A stretch of DNA of 63,184 nucleotides, filler included, from Reticulomyxa filosa (GCA_000512085.1; 22 parts of 22 records of this genome joined end to end with filler, not necessarily neighbours in it); one strand, 5' to 3'; positions 2,109 to 14,524 are shown, counted from the whole stretch's first letter. The notes: a model not told the origin generated them from the sequence alone. Numbers and translations: made by a program.

Positions 2109-5100
2109 TCAAAAAGAGTCAACTATATCATAAAAAATAAAAGATACCTCTATTGGTTCCCCATTCAATTGCCTAGCCTTTTGTTTCATGCGCAAGGTAC
2201 GCCAGTAGTATTCTCCTAAGTGCAGGACGTGTTGTTTCCATGCTTCCTCACAAAATTGGAGCGCCTTTTTCTTGTTCCCGTGAGCTTCACATAAAAACAT
2301 TAAGCGTTCAGCTGAACTGCTAATTGACATATCTTTTTGTCCAAATATTTCTTTCTTTATCTTTAGCGAATGTTCAAAATATTCGATTGCTTTTTCATTA
2401 CGTCCAATTCCAGAATACGCATCTCCCAAGCGCTCATACACAACATCAACATCAGAGCTGTTAATACCAAAAATTTCAATTCTGATTTTCAATGCGTTTC
2501 CATAATACTCCAATGCTTTGCTGTGCCAGCTAGAGGGTGCCATTTTGAAATATGTAGTGGCAACATCAGCATGATAAAAACCAAATATATTTAACCTAAT
2601 TTTCAATGCCTTTTCATAATATCCAAATGCATTTCCCGTGTTTTTGAGTTCGTGAAGAGAGGCCAAATTTTGATATGAATTAGCAACTTCGCTGTGACTG
2701 GCTCCAAACATATCGAGTCCCATTCTCAAAGCTTTTTCATAGTATTCAGTTGCTTCTGTGAGCCGGTACTGAGCCAAATGCAAATGTCCGAAATCGTTGT
2801 GTGACTCTATAATTTTTCGGTGCTTTGCTCCAAAAAGAGAGAGTCTAATTTGCAATGCTTTTTTAAAACTGTCCATTACTTTATCGGACATAGATTTTGG
2901 ATAGCTATCATTGCTTTTAGCATAATACACATTACCCAGATCGTGATATGAATCCGCGACATCACTGTGCTTCATCCCAAAAAGATTACGTCTCATTTTC
3001 AATGCCTTTGTATGGGATTCGATTGCTTGGTCGTACTTTCCACTAGCAGCATACACATTTCCTAACTTATTATAGGATGAAGCAACATTGGCGTGATTAT
3101 GTCCAAAAACAAATATATTGATTTGTAATGCTTTTTCATAGTATTCAATTGCCTTGGCATATTGCTTTTTTTTTAAATACACAGTCCCAAAATTATTGTA
3201 CAAATCAGTGAAAGAAATACGACTTTTATCAACAATATTCGATAGAATGTGCAATTCTTTTTCATAGTATTCAAGCGCTTTGCTATAATATCCTTTCATT
3301 AAATATGTATTTCCCAAATTGTCATACGAAGAGCCAATTTTTATGTGCTCCATTCCAAAAAGGGCTATTCTAATGTTCAATGCCTTTTCATGACAGTCAA
3401 TTGCTTTTTCATATTTTTCTTTGACACAGTAGACAAATCCTGCATTGGCGTACGAATCAGCAACATTGTTGTGATTCACTCCAAAAACATCTAATCGTAT
3501 TTTCAACGCTATTTCATATGATTCAAGCGCTTTGTCATATTCCTCTTTTTCAAAGTGAGTGTTCCCTAAGCCATTATACGAATCACTGACTTTACTATGA
3601 CTGGCTCCAAAATAACTGACTCTAATTTTTAATGCCTTTTCATAATAATCATGCGCTTTCTCACACTCCTTTTTGCTGAAATTGGCATTTCCTAAATTCT
3701 GGTATGAAGCCGCAACCTTATCGTGCTTCAATCCGAAAAGATCGACTCGGATTTTCAACGCATTTGCATGATAGTCAATTGCACGATCAATTTGTCCTTT
3801 CACCAAATAAATCTTGCCCAACTTGCTGTACGAAGAAGCGACACTAACGTGATTTGTTCCAAAGATATTTACATTGATTTTCAGTGACTCTTCGTAGAAT
3901 TTGGTCGCTTTGTCATATTGTTCTTTTTTTAAGTGGATATTCCCTAACTGGTAATATACATTTGCCACATCGGCATGACTGTCACCTAAAAGATGGAGTC
4001 TGATTTTCAAAGATTTTTCATAATATTCAATTGCTTTATCATCAATTTTCTTGAAATAGTCATTTCCCAAATCGTAATACAAGTCAGCAATCATGGTATG
4101 ATTATCTCGGAACATATCCAACATAATGTTTAGTGCACGTTCGTGATATTCAATCGATTTGTCAAGCCGCTTTTTATTTGCATAGGTATTCCCCAAGTGG
4201 TGATACAATTGCGCAACAAGCGCATGATTATCTCCATATCTTTTCAATATAACCTTTAATGCTTTTTCAAAATATTCAATAGCTTTGTCATATTGCTTCT
4301 TGGAGTCATGTGTAAGTCCAAGCAAGTTGTATGAAATAGCAACATAAGGATGGTCAAGACCAAATGTATTTACAGAAAGCTGCAAATGTTTTTGCAAATG
4401 AAGAATGGCATCATTATAAAGTCTTTTTTTTGAGCACTGCTCTCCTTTTTCTTCAAAATCTTGGAGTCGTGCCGGGACGTTATAATGCACTTTGGTATTC
4501 CATGGAATGGGTGAAATAGCTTGTTTCAATTGTGAATCAACAATTGCATTTGTCGTAATAAATAGCTGTGACATAATAGTTACATTCCCTTTGCATTGAA
4601 TCTCATTGTCAATTGCATACACATTCCCGGCAATATTTACTTCATTTAAAATTTGCAATTTGCATTTGATCACATACATCCAATATTCACCAAATTGTTG
4701 TTTATTCATCCCATTGTCGTCGTTCATCGACATTACAAATGAAGAATTCGCCCATTCCGCGCTATTATATGCAATCACAATCAATCCCCGCTCCTTTTTA
4801 TTAATCATTTCTTCTGCTATTTTTGCTGCCTCCACATTTGCTTTTCTCCAATTTTTATCACAATATTTCTTCAAATCCAAAGTCGGTGGGATGTCGCTAT
4901 CAGCCTTTGGCTCTGTTTCATCTTTGATTTCGCGATTTCCATTATCTTTACCACTTTGTGGCTGCTTTGATCTTGGGACCAAATAAAGTTCGGAGTGATT
5001 GACAGAAACAGTTTGAGCCACTTCTTTTCTCAACGCCTGGTCAAACACAGTCTCAATGACTTTTTTGACGTTCCAATCAAAGCTTTTATCCATGTTCTTT

Positions 5101-6111
5101 TCAATGCTCTGACAAAAGATGTTGGCAAAATGACTTCCTTTTTGTGCATTTGCACGTTTCGAGTTACCAATGGTCTGTTTTTTAGCAGTGTTTACAAATA
5201 TGGTAAACACATCCACATCCTGACCATACCACACATTTTTTTGCCTCGCATTGTTTGCTCGAGGACTTTTCATTTGCTTATCGTTATCTCTTTCTCCACT
5301 CCACGCGATCTTGATGAATATCTTGGGTTTGCCCGCAAAGTACTCTGTTTTGGTTGCAAACTCGTCTTGAATGTCTTTGATGCCTTTGATCTTGTTATCA
5401 CTTGTGATCAAGGTATCTCTATTGCTGCCAAATCCCCCATGTCCACACCACACAAATATCAACCCATCGTATGGCTGTCCATTGTCGTTGTCGGAACAAT
5501 TCTCTCTCAAATTCGAGCGATGCTTTGACAAAAACTTATTCAACTCATTTAATGTGAGTGACTCCGTATTTGGATTTTGTGGATTGTACGTACTGACTAC
5601 GTGGTAACCCAATTTAAATTCAAATAACATTTGCAATATGTGCAGATCTTGCTTTACATCTTCCAAATACGATTGCTGCTTATATTTCATTGCTCCTGCC
5701 AATAACACCAATGCATTTTTTACTTCGTACGAAAACACTGTTGCTTCTTTTTTTTCTTCTGTCTTTTTCATTTTTTCAATTGCTCCTATTTGTCATTTTC
5801 ACCCCCTTTTTTTTTTTTATTTGCAATTCCATTATGCAATAAAACAGTGTTTTTTTTTTTGTCACAAAAAAAAAACTTGGCCGAAATCGGACAGTAAAAA
5901 ATACTGGGTCCTTTGTAAATGCATCTACTACATTTTGATCAGATTCAACGTCACAACCTTTGCCGTCAATAATTGCCCCTATCACATCTTCAGCATGTGT
6001 CGGCTGAACTGCTAGACTTATTTGCTGTCTTAAGTTTTCGACTGTCAATCCTAGCAATATTATTGTATGCACTTTTGACCCATCATCTATAAATGCTTTG
6101 AATGATGACAT
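2109..6111 (-). CDS. PB1/ubiquitin-like + caspase-fold (C14, catalytic Cys>Trp) + ~18 x 42-aa TPR repeat protein, two exons
   Basis: Exon 1 (6111-5877) joins the 1220-aa ORF in frame through a GT-AG intron at 5876-5786 (..FRP-R-AIEKMKK..). Caspase p20 motifs are GLIFVWCGHG and GKPKIFIKIAWSG; the p10-like part is DVFTIFVNT..KGSHFANIFC..ELYLVP. From ~4470 to ~2150 there are kinesin-light-chain-type TPRs (A.SY.NLG..Y..K..Y.KA.EY.EKAL.I....FG..H). Confidence 0.9.
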
Positions 6112-6299: not shown

Positions 6300-7540
6300 T
6301 CAAATGATGCAAACTTTGGGTCTTTCAGGCTGTGGCATAAAAAGCATTAAAAATCCCACAAACGAATACGTTTATCATATGATCCAGATATATTGTATTC
6401 ATACCACAGATAATTCCTAATTCATTTGATCCATATTTTGCAATATTCACTCGTTTTTCAATTCAACGAACTGGCCCTTTATTTTAATATACATATTCAA
6501 ATGGTATTATCTCATGATCCAGCACAAATGATCCATTAAATGATGAAAATTCAATGTCATCAACACAACTGATGTGTTTATCAAAAATGAATAGTGATAA
6601 AAGTGTTCGTTGTGGGAAATTTAATCTGGTCAACATATTCAAGTGCCCAATGGACATAAATTTTGTATTATCTGTTGAATATTCATCATTGCCATTTTAT
6701 ATGCTTTTTTATTTGCTTTATTTCATGAATGATCTTTATCAATTTCAGTATTTGTATTAATAAAGGGAAACATTTCAATCACGAATTGTAGTAATTTGAA
6801 TAATTTATCCATCCAATGCTTTTTGTTTAGCCAATTTAGAAATTAATATTAAATTGTCATCTAATGATTTTGATAATTTAATATTTTCATCATCTTTTAT
6901 CAAATCTTTTTTGGTCATATCAATTGACTCTTGTTTGATCAATATCCCCAAAACGAATTGTATTATCTCTTGATCCAGAACATATTACATTTGAATTACC
7001 ATTACCATTCTTTATTACAAATGTAAATATTCAACAGCATGCACATAACGTGTATATCCATTGAACACTTGGATTTGTTGACAAGGTCGAATATCCCACA
7101 AACGAAGACTTTTATCATATTATCCAGATAATATTGTATTCACTAATTTATTTGATCTATATTTTACACTATCTACATCATTATTATGTCCCTTGAATGC
7201 ATTGAATTGTTTGGCTGTTTCATATCCCATATTTGAATAGTTGTATCCCATGGTCCAGAACAAATTGTATATCCATTGCGCCAATCACATTAATATTATT
7301 CATTTTATTATTTTTATTATTATTGTTGCCTTGTAATGATGAAATATCAACATATCAAACATTATTCTTATGTCCATTGAAAAAATGAATGATTTTGATA
7401 TTTGAAATCCCAAAAACGAATGATTTTGTCATGTGATGAAAAACAAATGACATTTTGACGATGATTATGATAATGCTATGACGAAAATTTCACACAAAAC
7501 ACATCATTTGAATGTTTATTGAATGATTGAATTTGTTTCA
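6300..7540 (-). pseudogene. Degenerate WD40-repeat gene(s) of the expanded lineage-specific family
   Basis: Minus-strand pieces KQIQSFNKHSNDVFCVKFSS*HYHNHRQNVICFSSHDKIIRFWDF, TICSGPWDTTI and SGSYDKRIRLWD carry stops and frameshifts. Same family as 62430-63184. Confidence 0.8.
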
Positions 7541-9588: not shown

Positions 9589-12500
9589 TCAAACATGTAA
9601 TTTCGGAGCAAATTTGGCTCTATAAGCCTCAACAAGCTCATCACCTCTCGATCTACCAGCGTGTTTAAGAATTGTCGTAGAAACAATATCAATTAATTGC
9701 TCTGAGCCTTGATCTGAATTAATTTGTAATTCTGCACATTTACCACCTGAAGTACGAGCTATTGCTTCAAAATGTCTTTTTGCTTTTTCTCCCACATAGA
9801 AGGCATGCACAGTGATGTTACTTTGTTTCAAGAGGTCAAGTTCTTTCTTATAGTAAGTGGGAATAGAGAATTTCGTGCCTTTCCAACAATGTTCGCCTTT
9901 GATCTGTCTTTTCTTGTCCACTTCCTGTCTTTTATTTGGTGGCATGTCTCCAATCAAAATGACTTGTGAAACGTCTTCTTTTCCGGCTTCTGTGTTGACA
10001 CAAGCAAGTCCAATTTCAATGGCCTCATTTCCCAGTCCATAATCTGCACGAACAGTCTCCATAAACTTACGCAAATTATCAGGTTTCGATTCCCAGGGAG
10101 AAGCTTGCAAAATCATATCTTCAGATGCATTGTAATTGCGATACACCATAAATTGCATTTCAAAACAATCGGGAGGTAATTCCTTATCCTTCAAAATAGT
10201 TGAAATTCTATCAAACATAGTGCAAACTGCATTTTTTGCTTTTTGCAATAAATGTTGCATGGAGCCAGTTGCATCCATAAGCACCACTGTATGTGAAGGT
10301 TTTCTCTCTTCCGCTCCTTTATTTCGCTCACATAATAAGTTTTTCGCTGTACTTGCAAGTCCTTTTTTCACAGATGCAATCAATTTTTCACTCGTTTCGT
10401 GCTCTTTTGCAGCATATTTTACATATTTTTTTTTTGTTCTCAGTGCATTGAGTTTTGAAGAATTCACATCGCTTTGCATTGAGCATTGGATAAAAATTAC
10501 CCGCGTTTACGTGCATTTTCTATTTCTGTTTTGCTTGAAAATTTCTCAAGTGATTTATCACACAATACCAAACTGTAAGAACCAGGTCCTCCTTGTCTGG
10601 CAGTTACGCCCTTTGATTTGTACTTCTTCAGACAACTCTTCAGAAAGAAAGGTTTGAATCACATTGTGGTCCACCATTGGCAGCCATAATTTGATTACGG
10701 ACAAACAAAGTCAGTTCCTCGTCCAAATACTTTGGTGAATAATCCCACTTGACCAGAACTGGTAGCACGCTTGATGAGAGATTCTTTCTCTGCGAACGAA
10801 TTTTCTTCAGTCATTACAAATTGCATCATATTTAATTTCAGAAAAATTTGGTGATTCATAAAATTCCATCAATTGTTTCTTGGTTTCGAAGAACACCAAT
10901 ACAGCTCGCTTTGCTCCTTGCGTTTTTTCAACAAGCCAATTATCAATTTCTTTTTTAAGAGTAATGAAATAATCATTTTCATCCACAATGAAAATGTCTG
11001 CTTTTTCTGTAAAGGCGAGTTGGTTCTTGCTGAACAAAGATGGCATATAAGTATATTTGGAAATATGATACTCTTTCTCCATCACTTCTTGTTCAAGTGT
11101 GCTCAATATCTCCAATGTCCCACTAACACCCATAATGCAATAGAAACTTTTAGGAACCTCAGCATATGAAAAATTTCCAATTTGGAATGAAAGGAATATA
11201 TATATATTGTTTTTTTAAACTTTCAGCACTGATTTTATTTTGTGAATGTTCATGATAACACGCAAATAAAGTCTTGTAACCATATCGAATATCGTAAGAA
11301 ATACCACCTTGTTCTTTGTATCCAATTTTATCATTGCTCACTTGATATCCATGAGACTCAAAAAGCTTTGAACATCACTCAACATATCTTTAATCGCTTC
11401 ATCCAACAATGAATCCCATCCTTTCAATACATTACAACATGTCTTGTATTCATTGGATTGTTTTACATCCTTCAATTTCAAAAATTGAGCTTTTATTATT
11501 CCAAATAAAGTCAATAAGTTTGGTGATGGCATCATGTCGCAATATAGTTGCAGGTGAATAGCAGCTGCCATAAAAGTCTGTGTTGAAAAATACATCAACT
11601 TCATCAATTAAAAGTATCTTTGAACGAATGACCTGCTCTCAACTTCATTAGATTTTTTTTTCTTCATTATCATTACCAGGAAGGATTACATTTTCAACAA
11701 GTTTGCGCACATCACCTCCTTCATTAATAATCCTTTCACAAATCTTGTTGAATGTGCCATAATGAATATGGATCAATTACACCCAAGGTATTGAACATTT
11801 GCTCAAAACTTTTGAAATCTCTGCCACTCAAGTATTCACTGTATGAAGTGCAACTCACATCAAAGCCAAATAATGCCAATACACAACAAGCGACTGCCAA
11901 AGTCACTGATTTCCCTTCTCCTGTCCCGAATTTGAATCAAATGATTTGTCAATCCAGATATTTTCTCTCCAACACCCAACATACGGAATATGGAAATCAC
12001 TTGAGCTGGATGTGGTTGTACCAAATAAGAATTTTGATCTTCAACACCTTTGTGCATCATGATAGTATTGTACGTGTTGAAGTGTCCACAATGCAAAAAT
12101 GTTAGCCATTACTTCGGGGATATTGTGTCGAACACTTGGGTCCCATCTTTCATTCCCTGGTATTTGTTTGATATCACTAGCATATATTCTTGCATTATTT
12201 GCAAATACGCTGAGTTGCTTCGGGTCATTTTTGATTTTGTCCAGATTGTTTTGCACAAATTGGCGATATTTTATATTAAACTCATCATACATTTTCTTTA
12301 ATTTCGATGTATCTATTGAATCATCTTTGACATTAATCTTTTCCAAAACATAGTCAATTCCATGTGTCAGGGTTTTCTGATTGAATAATGCAACAGAAAG
12401 TCCTTTGAATACATTATGCTCAGCGACAATCATCTTACTCACTCCGGTTAATTCTTCTTCCAGTTGTATTGCTGCTAGTGCCGTAATATCGACACCCCCT

Positions 12501-14524
12501 ATTGCTCTTTTTTTTTGGTAAGCAATTAATAGTGCATCAATACGTTTGTTAATGGTTATCTTTAAATTCAAAAAAAAGAATATACGGATATGGCTTTCAT
12601 TTCCACTAAGCGGGGTATTAGGAACTTTGGATGCAAGTCATCAATTGCCTCTTTTTCCAATCGCGTAACTCATGTCTTCACAATGGAGTCAATAATTTCA
12701 ACTTGGGATTTCGCAAGATCTGAAAATATGGCATGTCTCTTCATGGCAAGAAAACACTTGTAACACTGGCTAAGATAGCCACAATCTGAGGAGGTCCCAG
12801 TTGGAATTTTTTCCTATTTTCTTAGCAATATCTTGTATGTCCTTTTCTAATTGTTTTGAACATTCCTCTAGTTTCTCAACGCTTGTGACATGAACTTTGC
12901 ATTGAGACATTTGATGCATGAATTCGAGTTTGTCTTTCATGTCTTGGAAAAACTTATCTCGTTTTGTATCGTTTCCTTTAATAGTGATTTCGTTGAAGAC
13001 TCCTTCCCTGTTTATCTCTCGTATCATCTGTTCCAAATTATTATTAAGAGCAACTTTCGTTTCCGAATACGTCCACAGATCAGAGGGGGTCTGATTTTCA
13101 GGAATACCCCAAGATATCTTTTTTTGTCTAAACGACATTATCTTTTGCAAAAAGGGGGTGTTATCACCAACTTCTTTCATGGAGTCCAATACTTTTTGTA
13201 AGTCATATACATTTCTTTGCTCAAAATCGGCATTGTATTTTTTTTTTTTTTTGCAATAATGCAAAACAGTCGGAAATGTTTTTGTCTAATTCTTTCATTT
13301 TTTCTTCAAAATTGGGTGGTATTAATTCGTTACTTTCGCCTTTCAAGCTCATGCATTCAATAGCCAAAGTCCAGCGCTTTTTCAATTGGCTTTTATGGTA
13401 TTGGCTCCAAACTCACAGCGATTAAATGCATCAAAGCTAGCCACTGTTTTTTTTGTTGCACCTTTTCGACCTGATTGGTGAATGTGACTTGTGCAGCTTT
13501 GAGACAATTATCGAGATCGGGTATTGTTATTTTTGTTGACTTTTTCAAGTTATGCAATTCTTTTAACTTTTTCCAATGCCCTCACCGTATCTTCGTTGGC
13601 CCATTTCTGCTCTATGCCTGCGGTCATGTCTCGAGTCATATATGTTGTGGCAACTTTTGTTTCGACCATCTTTTTTTGATTGGCTGTGCACTTATCTAAA
13701 AATTGATTAATATCGTTCACATTTTTGCTGTCAACTATTTTCGGCTACTGCTCCTGCAGCAATTTCCATTTCATATAATATATATCTTTTTCACTTTGCA
13801 TGATCTCTTCCTCAAGCATATTTTTCATGTGATCAGGTAAAAAAACTATTAATACTGCCCCTACAAAGTCGAATATAAGAACCAATTTCCCATGGATGTA
13901 AAATCACCCACTTTCTCACGAAGCTTCGATCAATTGCTTTCGAATTTTTAGAATAATGTCATTTTTCAATCTCTTTCCATCTATCTTTGTATAGAGCGCC
14001 CTTGTTCATTATTGTGCAAAGTTGTTCGTACATTTCTCTGGGTGGAAATGAAGCATAAGGATTAAACGTGTGTCCAATTAGATGAATACTTGTGTATTTA
14101 TCCACAATTTCTTGTAATTTGTTTTCAATTCTTTTCCCTTAGTTTCTGCATGCACAACTCATGATCGTGTCTCTGTTTCTTTCGTTTCCATTACCCTCTT
14201 GTCCTTTCTTCACATCTCCTTCATTGTCTAAGGGCGCAGGTTCACAATAATCTCCTAAAATATCGACAATCCTTTGAACCAGCGTAATTTTGTTTTTTGC
14301 GCCTCCAAAAAAATTCAAAGTATTCACAGATGCATCGAGTGTGTCCAATACCACTTTCATCCACCTTCCAATGGCAAATTTCGTTTTATCTACTGTTTTT
14401 TTTCAATTTCTCTTTGTGCTACCTCATCCACAAATTGGATTACCAAGTGTCGTGCATTTTTGATATGTCCTAAGTTATCCACCAATTTTGTCACTCTGTT
14501 CAAATCCACTTCGTCCTCCCCCCC
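9589..14524 (-). CDS. Large SecA-like SF2 (DEAD/DEVD) ATPase fused to a C-terminal vWA domain; many frameshifts, 5' end cut by the fragment edge
   Basis: Motifs in order on the minus strand: GTGEGKS (11927-11907), SEYLSGRD, LLIDEVD (DEVD 11605-11594), MGVSGTL, AVLVFFE, FGRGTDF (GRGTD 10724-10710), GGPHVIQTF and QIKGRTARQGGPGS (~10620-10578). The vWA MIDAS LMDATGSM follows at ~10270, then VILIGD. Helical ORF pieces at 12041-14360 lie upstream on the same strand. Confidence 0.8.

Follow-up and report, generated by a model that had tools for sequence, protein, structure and literature searches.

A truncated Reticulomyxa filosa gene of a giant protein family that joins a SecA-derived motor to a von Willebrand factor A domain

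The stretch of DNA analysed here (the window; 63,184 nucleotides, filler included) joins 22 parts from 22 records of the Reticulomyxa filosa genome (GCA_000512085.1), and its positions 9589-14524 carry, on the minus strand, a region related to SecA, which in its canonical form is the bacterial and plastid secretion motor. This region is the 3' part (about 1640 codons, the back two-thirds) of the gene for a giant, predicted soluble R. filosa protein, in which a SecA-derived motor is followed by a C-terminal von Willebrand factor A (vWA) domain. It is one of two clear genes on a contig of 14.5 kb, the other being an open reading frame (ORF) of TPR type, and both lie on the minus strand. The GC content of this contig was 25-31% in the intergenic parts versus 34-38% in the coding parts. 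The gene runs off the contig end at position 14524, which corresponds to residue 200 of P0327 (RFI_00186), the closest intact relative, encoded in the same assembly by a single uninterrupted ORF of 5448 nt (L002:51-5498). Since the gene is cut at this point, at least the N-terminal third of the full-length protein is missing from the contig.

As listed in Table 1, all the SecA motor motifs named in the original prediction were present on the minus strand, in the predicted order. They did not form one reading, however, because they fall into three different frames, and two of them ('GGxHVI' and 'QxxGRxARQG') can be read only with one base dropped in each. The longest stop-free stretch in the region was 305 codons, and the only sizeable ORF, at 9592-10506, was 98% identical to the database protein RFI_25649. 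Frame-aware protein-to-DNA alignment of the window with P0327 ran from 14521 to 9592 with 80% identity over 1613 residues and contained 29 frame shifts, all of +1 or +2; two further insertions were hidden in a knot of stops at 11650-11639, in the first nucleotide-binding domain (NBD1), and this stop cluster is their effect. Four breaks fall in the second nucleotide-binding domain (NBD2; at about 10817, 10699, 10665, and 10604) and two in the scaffold-helix segment (at about 10507 and at 10431, an A10 run). Altogether, about 31 frame-breaking insertions and one or two stop codons, among them a TGA, were counted in 10431-14524. Frameshifts had been foreseen, but their extent was understated, and so was the truncation of the gene at the contig end. 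The same alignment bore out the proposed helical coding sequence of more than 2 kb upstream of the motor, showing the 2.5 kb of the pre-motor region to be homologous coding sequence of the same gene. A Pfam scan of this region found no family, and an ESM Atlas look-up gave no usable match. For the tree and the residue checks, a read-through of the window copy with X at each break was used, while the library searches used separate pieces.

The ATPase was found to be specifically of SecA type, as had been claimed. When a profile of 84 motors of the family (A1) was compared with PDB sequences, the best 24 matches were all SecA or SecA2 (E 4e-18 to 7e-11), and the next was the DEAD-box protein Mss116 (2e-6). 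The Walker A piece of the window alone matched Pfam SecA_DEAD (E 3e-9). An AlphaFold2 (AF2) model of P0327:960-1560, with a predicted local distance difference test score (pLDDT) of 89.3 and a predicted template modelling score (pTM) of 0.86, had SecA as all of its top 36 Foldseek matches. In VIA-align, this model aligned to substrate-engaged SecA (6itc_A) over 504 residues with a Z of 29.2, versus about 320 residues and a Z of about 21 for DEAD-box helicases, so the SecA coverage was about 180 residues greater. In hhalign against four canonical SecA proteins, taken from bacterial genomes that also carry a giant protein, query residues 1-601 were placed on SecA 18-697 (E 1.7e-31). The insert of about 145 residues between motifs II and III, at the place of the preprotein cross-linking domain (PPXD) of SecA, aligned with SecA residues of about 217-380 ('DYIV' strand included), and the long helix at the end of the query fell on SecA scaffold helix 1. 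After this one long scaffold-type helix, the chain passes through two short helices into the vWA domain. The wing domain and the C-terminal tail of SecA are absent from the family motor, and Pfam scans of homologs gave no SecA_SW match.

A Pfam SecA_DEAD match, together with the automatic UniProt name of the relatives ('SecA family profile domain-containing protein'), would also be expected of an ordinary SecA that came from bacterial contamination or, as an organelle-type SecA, was mis-assembled beside a vWA gene. This reading was refuted by the NCBIfam scores and the tree position, and we give it practically no weight. The NCBIfam model PRK09200 reached 53 bits against a cut-off of 862, and the SecA2 models reached 34-39 bits against cut-offs of 725-1085. 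In the tree, the family formed a clade with 100% support, separated by a branch of 1.36 from the canonical SecA of the same four bacterial genomes, and the window copy sat inside this clade. Furthermore, the contig carries only two genes in 14.5 kb with spacers of 25% GC, and motor and vWA are continuous in the paralogs. The motor is therefore not an orthologue of Sec-pathway SecA, and the tree against bacterial SecA, which had been proposed as a check, showed that the ATPase is not nested in ordinary bacterial SecA; that it is no Sec-pathway SecA supports the original prediction. Taken together, profile, fold, and tree show that the motor is derived from SecA, comprising NBD1, an insert at the PPXD position, NBD2, and the first scaffold helix, and that it lies far outside canonical SecA.

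The C-terminal domain had been described as a vWA domain with an intact DxTGS site. It was found as DATGS in an open ORF, and the AF2 model of window 9592-10431 showed a vWA alpha/beta fold with a pLDDT of 94, for which Foldseek matched CMG2, the integrin beta I-like domain, TFIIH p44, and Sec23/24 vWA (E 1e-8 to 5e-7). The Pfam assignment did not hold at the usual threshold, since VWA scored 18.2 bits, below the gathering score of 23.8, and the PDB sequence profile gave only E 0.086. DATGS is a DxTxS variant of the putative metal ion-dependent adhesion site (MIDAS); in the A2 alignment of the family, conservation reaches at least 90% at its D, T, and S and at the D of LIGD. The Thr of the DxSxS ... 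T ... D pattern was not identified. The gene model of RFI_25649 (P0001; 9400-9700, minus strand) departs from the family-conserved C-terminus ...ELVEAYRAKFAPKLHV (stop 9591-9589) through a predicted splice into downstream sequence. Because homologs stop at the conserved stop, the 3' end of this model looks wrong. The RFI_25649 entry represents only part of a far longer gene, which lies in a poor stretch of a very fragmented draft assembly of 50,809 scaffolds with an N50 of 3.6 kb (PMC13746701).

Table 1 Features of the SecA-like/vWA region, from the 5' to the 3' side of the gene, in positions of the window.
Feature	Position	Strand	Remarks
Pre-motor helical region	12040-14524	-	P0327 residues 200-1008; 18 frame-breaking insertions; TGA at 12672-12670 replaces an Arg codon
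SecA-like NBD1, first part	11585-12039	-	Walker A GTGEGKS, motif Ia YLSGRD, Walker B IDEVD; SecA_DEAD match; hhalign
GTGEGKS	11927-11907	-	Frame 2
YLSGRD	11834-11817	-	Frame 2
IDEVD	11608-11594	-	Frame 0
Insert of about 145 residues between motifs II and III, at the SecA PPXD position	11140-11584	-	hhalign, aligned length
Return into NBD1, motif III	11065-11139	-	hhalign
GVSGT (motif III)	11130-11116	-	Frame 1
SecA-like NBD2	10536-11064	-	GRGTD, NGG/(H)VIQTF at 10684-10648, QIKGR, TARQGGPGS; homologs match Helicase_C and P-loop_SecA
GRGTD	10724-10710	-	Frame 2
NGG	ends at 10670	-	Frame 0
NVIQTF	10665-10648	-	Frame 1
QIKGR	10620-10606	-	Frame 1
TARQGGPGS	10604-10578	-	Frame 2
Long helix equivalent to SecA scaffold helix 1	10366-10532	-	AF2 model helix 555-596; hhalign to SecA about 620-697
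Only open ORF (ATG at 10479)	9589-10479	-	RFI_25649, 'VWFA domain-containing protein'
Two linker helices and C-terminal vWA	9592-10365	-	No frame break; stop TGA 9591-9589; AF2 model, Foldseek, conservation
DATGS	10275-10261	-	Frame 1
LIGD	9957-9946	-	In vWA

The fusion of a SecA motor with a vWA domain in one protein, the central claim of the original prediction, was confirmed in the paralog RFI_00186 and across the family, but not in the window contig as assembled, where the two do not share one ORF and the annotation gives the vWA a gene of its own. In 187 of the 204 stored proteins with a complete motor, the vWA directly follows the motor and ends the protein. Homologs of the vWA ORF often have P-loop_SecA and Helicase_C in the same protein, and in P0006, P0025, and P0042 the GRGTD motif and motif VI run uninterrupted into the vWA. 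An ORF marked complete in the transcriptome of the choanoflagellate Helgoeca nana (3535 aa) carries the motor at 2650-3270 and the vWA at 3230-3531. The survey of domain architectures, which had been suggested as a check, thus showed the vWA fusion to be a fixed feature of the giant family, the Helgoeca nana ORF included.

An exhaustive HMMER search was made with the N-terminal motor piece of a metagenomic relative as the query. It returned 1278 cluster representatives (clusters at 50% identity), of which 977 had E<=1e-10, with a typical length of 2700-3500 aa and the match at about 1900-2500. The family is therefore large, with at least 977 clusters at this identity. Among the organisms with named members are the bdelloid rotifers Adineta, Rotaria, and Didymodactylos, as well as Hydra vulgaris, several species of Tetrahymena, and R. 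filosa. The common build starts with a variable head and a weak P-loop of GTPase type, continues with helices over about 1500 aa, and ends with the SecA-like motor and the C-terminal vWA. The N-terminal parts gave weak P-loop GTPase matches (MMR_HSR1, RsgA), mostly under the Pfam cut-offs, and some of them carry a U-box. Residues 1-380 of P0325, the part that in other members is a U-box or matches nothing recognisable, contain a lectin of jacalin type (E 1e-12) followed by a GTPase of GBP type (E 3e-15). A check of 120 full-length members for transmembrane or signal-like segments detected only a buried NBD1 element, and the family members are thus predicted to be soluble.

The family is present in many copies in rotifers, and at least 13 annotated fragments of it were found in R. 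filosa. Several family loci lie on single contigs in Tetrahymena and Hydra. The R. filosa record ASPP01003559.1 (L003) holds a tandem array, in which one motor-vWA member with an open stretch of 1538 codons and one frame shift upstream is followed by a decayed vWA remnant annotated as RFI_03865 (one shift, two stops) and then by the start of another copy, of 2780 aa. A metagenome contig of 31% GC (L001) carries a copy that is 58% identical to P0121 over 2673 residues, with five frame shifts and three in-frame stops, one of them a TAA between motor and vWA at a position where relatives have Tyr. Gene callers split this copy into SecA_DEAD, P-loop_SecA, and a 'stand-alone' vWA of 280 aa. Many of the short vWA matches in the databases may be fragments like those of L001.

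The locus had been described as a gene for a eukaryotic giant protein. The R. filosa contig, the sparse genes, and the AT-rich spacers agree with this, but the family itself is not confined to eukaryotes. A scan of prokaryotes with one genome per species found 32 loci, mostly in Legionellales, Coxiellaceae, Chlamydiae, Wolbachia, and metagenome-assembled genomes (MAGs) of Gammaproteobacteria. Several of these loci are single ORFs of 3000-3460 aa with motor and vWA, and others end after the motor. The whole giant protein was present as one ORF in L004 (10001-19141), L006, L008, L009, L011, and L024, which belong to Legionellales, Chlamydiae, and Gammaproteobacteria MAGs; the L004 protein has a U-box of eukaryotic type and lies amid housekeeping genes. 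P0318, from a Gammaproteobacteria MAG, has a U-box and lies among the ordinary bacterial genes rpmB, rpmG, dut, radC, and pcnB. In Wolbachia, motor relatives without a vWA stand at the end of ORFs of about 1500 aa (L020, L023, L041), and the ORF next to it, of 2585-3911 aa, holds another SecA_DEAD module that is more divergent. A quick search did not pick up canonical secA in that Wolbachia genome. In the midpoint-rooted tree, bacterial forms without a vWA branched first and bacterial forms with a vWA next, while the eukaryotic sequences all fell into one clade with 95% support that also included three bacterial ones (L004, L005, L006). With the root placed at the midpoint, this branching order suggests a bacterial origin of the family, transfer to eukaryotes, and some transfer back.

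The explanation that we favour, and that we hold to be reasonably probable as a whole, is that the window carries an R. filosa copy of this giant family with its SecA-derived motor and vWA, that the frame breaks are mostly artefact, and that the protein works as a cytosolic clamp in conflict between hosts and microbes. As to the breaks, DNA alignment of the window with L002 (87.3% identity) showed 36 insertions in the window, 29 of them frame-breaking, and two deletions, both in frame. Frame-breaking insertions therefore outnumbered deletions by 29:0 (p 4e-9), and 17 of the 18 one-base insertions extended a run of the same base (null 0.46, p 2e-5). Nonsense changes numbered one or two against about 10 expected from 200 neutral substitutions (P 0.002). 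With the insertions removed, dN/dS against L002 was 0.35 overall and 0.23 for the motor alone, and the window copy retains each of the 19 motor residues that are invariant in the family. With P0137 as the outgroup, 51 lineage-specific amino-acid changes were counted in the window versus 73 in the intact paralog, so the window lineage is not accelerated. The breaks were densest in the blocks most similar to the paralog, which fits a consensus built from collapsed paralog reads. Going from the 5' side to the vWA, nucleotide identity to L002 declines steadily, starting at 90-96% and reaching 74-80%, and the breaks cease below about 82%.

Several observations weigh against an artefact. The 3.6-kb TPR ORF of this contig is just as rich in base runs and contains no break, against 28 expected; in two other family copies of the assembly, 0 and 1 break were counted per 5.4 kb; the change from CGA to TGA at 12672-12670 is not an indel-type error; and the last 840 nt, which encode the vWA, contain no break against 6.4 expected (P 0.0017). 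These observations, like the 31 breaks and the TGA themselves, would be accounted for if the locus were a genuine pseudogene. A duplicated family member would then have decayed through numerous small insertions and left only the vWA ORF at its end (RFI_25649), either as a possible stand-alone vWA protein or by chance. Decayed relatives do exist, as seen in the vWA remnant of L003 and in L001. Ordinary decay also yields deletions, however, which the frame-breaking changes lack entirely, and the shortage of nonsense changes, the retained motor residues, the unaccelerated lineage, and the clustering of breaks in paralog-like blocks all argue against it. We therefore lean towards consensus or sequencing artefacts as the source of most breaks; decay keeps a substantial chance as their cause, and the full pseudogene account, with only the vWA ORF surviving, is a serious but somewhat doubtful contender. 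It could also be supposed that the breaks are biological and that the cell makes up for them during expression, either through programmed +1 frameshifting or by taking the extra bases out of the transcript; in favour of this, every break shifts the frame the same way (+1 or +2), and conservation of the corrected reading is good. The break sites share no common sequence motif, however, the 80%-identical paralogs need no correction, and no such mechanism is known to us for Foraminifera, which makes this reading extremely improbable. GT..AG introns were also dismissed as the cause of the frame changes, because the paralog ORF aligns straight through and the insertions measure 1-10 bases.

As to the function, the motor would act as a cytosolic, ATP-driven clamp or remodeller of polypeptide, in which the PPXD-like insert, NBD2, and the scaffold helix would form a cleft of SecA type. 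The MIDAS site of the vWA would hold a target or partner through an acidic residue, and the N-terminal GTPase and the variable head (U-box, lectin) would give switching and targeting. An active motor with a SecA-type clamp is suggested by the conservation of the ATPase motifs, the insert, and the scaffold helix. The predicted solubility of the proteins and their eukaryotic setting speak against membrane translocation, and translocation in the strict sense is doubtful because the two-helix finger, which in SecA pushes the polypeptide, was not identified in the motor by hhalign. The vWA, being fixed in the family, is a candidate adaptor that would grip a target as in the AAA+/vWA machines, an analogy only. 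We infer a cytosolic ATP-driven clamp with a vWA adaptor. The function put forward in the original prediction, a polypeptide-translocating or unfolding ATPase with the vWA as substrate adaptor, possibly in defence, is likewise an inference. Its use in host-symbiont conflict, or a role in host-pathogen conflict, is probable in view of the family expansion, the tandem arrays, the variable heads, and the sharing with obligate intracellular bacteria.

Besides the missing finger, some results count against this proposal. PADLOC gave no defence-system match and only a marginal P-loop match; the insert had no Pfam SecA_PP_bind match, so that it is assigned as PPXD from its position, the hhalign result, and the aligned length; no R. 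filosa copy showed the N-terminal GTPase, and the window contig ends before that part; literature searches found neither a paper describing the family nor a characterised member; and the SF2 core could act on RNA or DNA instead. In this last case, the motor would be an RNA- or DNA-dependent SF2 ATPase or sensor with the vWA as its regulatory partner, as TFIIH p44 is for XPD. The DEAD-like SF2 core, with DEAD-box helicases as the next-best matches (Z about 21; Mss116 E 2e-6), the presence of TFIIH p44/Ssl1 among the best vWA fold matches, and the lack of a recognisable two-helix finger would agree with this. The motor nevertheless keeps features specific to SecA, namely the YLSxRD motif Ia context, GGxHVIxT...QxxGRxxRQGxxGS, the PPXD-site insert, and the scaffold helix, and its SecA matches are longer than its helicase matches by about 180 residues; domain scans of homologs detected no nucleic-acid-binding accessory domain. 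We therefore regard a nucleic-acid motor as rather unlikely. Still less likely is a role as proposed for giant Omnitrophota and actinobacterial proteins, in which the bacterial members would be part of secreted effectors. Giants with divergent SecA DEAD and preprotein-binding domains, lacking scaffold and wing, have been described with that proposal (bioRxiv 10.1101/2023.11.21.568195), SecA-like domains occur in giant actinobacterial toxins (PMC8195603) and in Amoebophilus effectors (PMC3482391), and the bacterial family members belong to host-associated lineages. However, the present family has no transmembrane segments or signal peptides, unlike the Omnitrophota giants, its eukaryotic members have no cytosolic SecYEG partner, and its motor adjoins a vWA rather than membrane anchors.

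The other gene of the contig, at 2109-5771 on the minus strand, is an open ORF of 1220 codons with 12 repeats of TPR_12/NPHP3 type (E 2.5e-116) and no frame break; its first 470 residues or so had no Pfam match. An initial impression of WD40-like pieces at 6300-7350 was dropped, since Pfam gave no support.

The window locus itself is a truncated, frame-broken copy of doubtful integrity, while the family to which it belongs is a real and large one, unusual and as yet uncharacterised. The presence of a conserved ATPase derived from SecA in hundreds of soluble giants would show the reuse of this motor for another job. The hosts of the family include rotifers, Hydra, ciliates, foraminifera, and a choanoflagellate, and it is shared with obligate intracellular bacteria, a distribution that makes it a clear case of gene exchange between hosts and intracellular bacteria. 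So far the family has been catalogued only under automatic names, and it is open to experiment because Tetrahymena and Hydra hold intact copies. More speculatively, and with less chance of being right than wrong, the giants may form an unrecognised class of cytosolic machine built from a bacterial translocation motor, serving immunity or symbiont control in protists and early-branching animals and passed back and forth between these hosts and Legionellales, Chlamydiae, and Wolbachia, with a role as effectors in the bacteria.

Compared with canonical SecA and SecA2, the family shares tandem RecA-like NBD1 and NBD2 domains with the SecA versions of motifs I, Ia, II, III, V, and VI, the insert of about 145 aa at the PPXD site, a long helix corresponding to scaffold helix 1, and the best PDB profile and fold matches. 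In contrast to them, it is only 14-20% identical, has no wing, identified two-helix finger, or C-terminal tail, and carries its motor embedded at about 2000-2700 of a protein of about 3000 aa, with the vWA next to it; it also occurs in eukaryotic cytosolic proteins without a SecYEG partner. The literature searches turned up several mentions that come nearest to the family. Omnitrophota giant proteins carry divergent SecA modules without scaffold and wing (bioRxiv 10.1101/2023.11.21.568195), a SecA-like ATPase is found in giant actinobacterial toxins (PMC8195603), SecA-like, helicase-related domains occur in Amoebophilus effectors (PMC3482391), and secondary SecA_DEAD proteins have been described (PMC4452313). 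These giants and endosymbiont effectors resemble the present family in having divergent SecA DEAD (and preprotein-binding) modules without scaffold or wing in very large proteins, a normal SecA in the same genome, and host-associated or predatory bacteria as carriers. The giants differ in their many transmembrane segments and their enzymatic or adhesin domains, and neither a vWA nor a GTPase has been reported in them, whereas the present family is predicted to be soluble, has a fixed order of GTPase, helical region, motor, and vWA, and is abundant in eukaryotes; the relatedness of the two was examined only through the weak bacterial matches on the tree.

The pairing of an NTP motor with a MIDAS vWA that grips the target recalls the MoxR-vWA systems (RavA-ViaA, CbbQ-CbbO), the BchI-BchD Mg-chelatase, midasin/Rea1, and VWA8. 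This likeness is an analogy only, as those machines are AAA+ rings, whereas the family motor is a two-lobe ATPase of SF2/SecA type without sequence relationship to them. XPD-p44 of TFIIH offers a case in which an SF2 ATPase works with a vWA, and p44/Ssl1 is among the best fold matches of the window vWA. XPD and p44 are separate subunits acting on DNA, whereas the family joins motor and vWA in one protein, with a motor nearer to SecA than to XPD.

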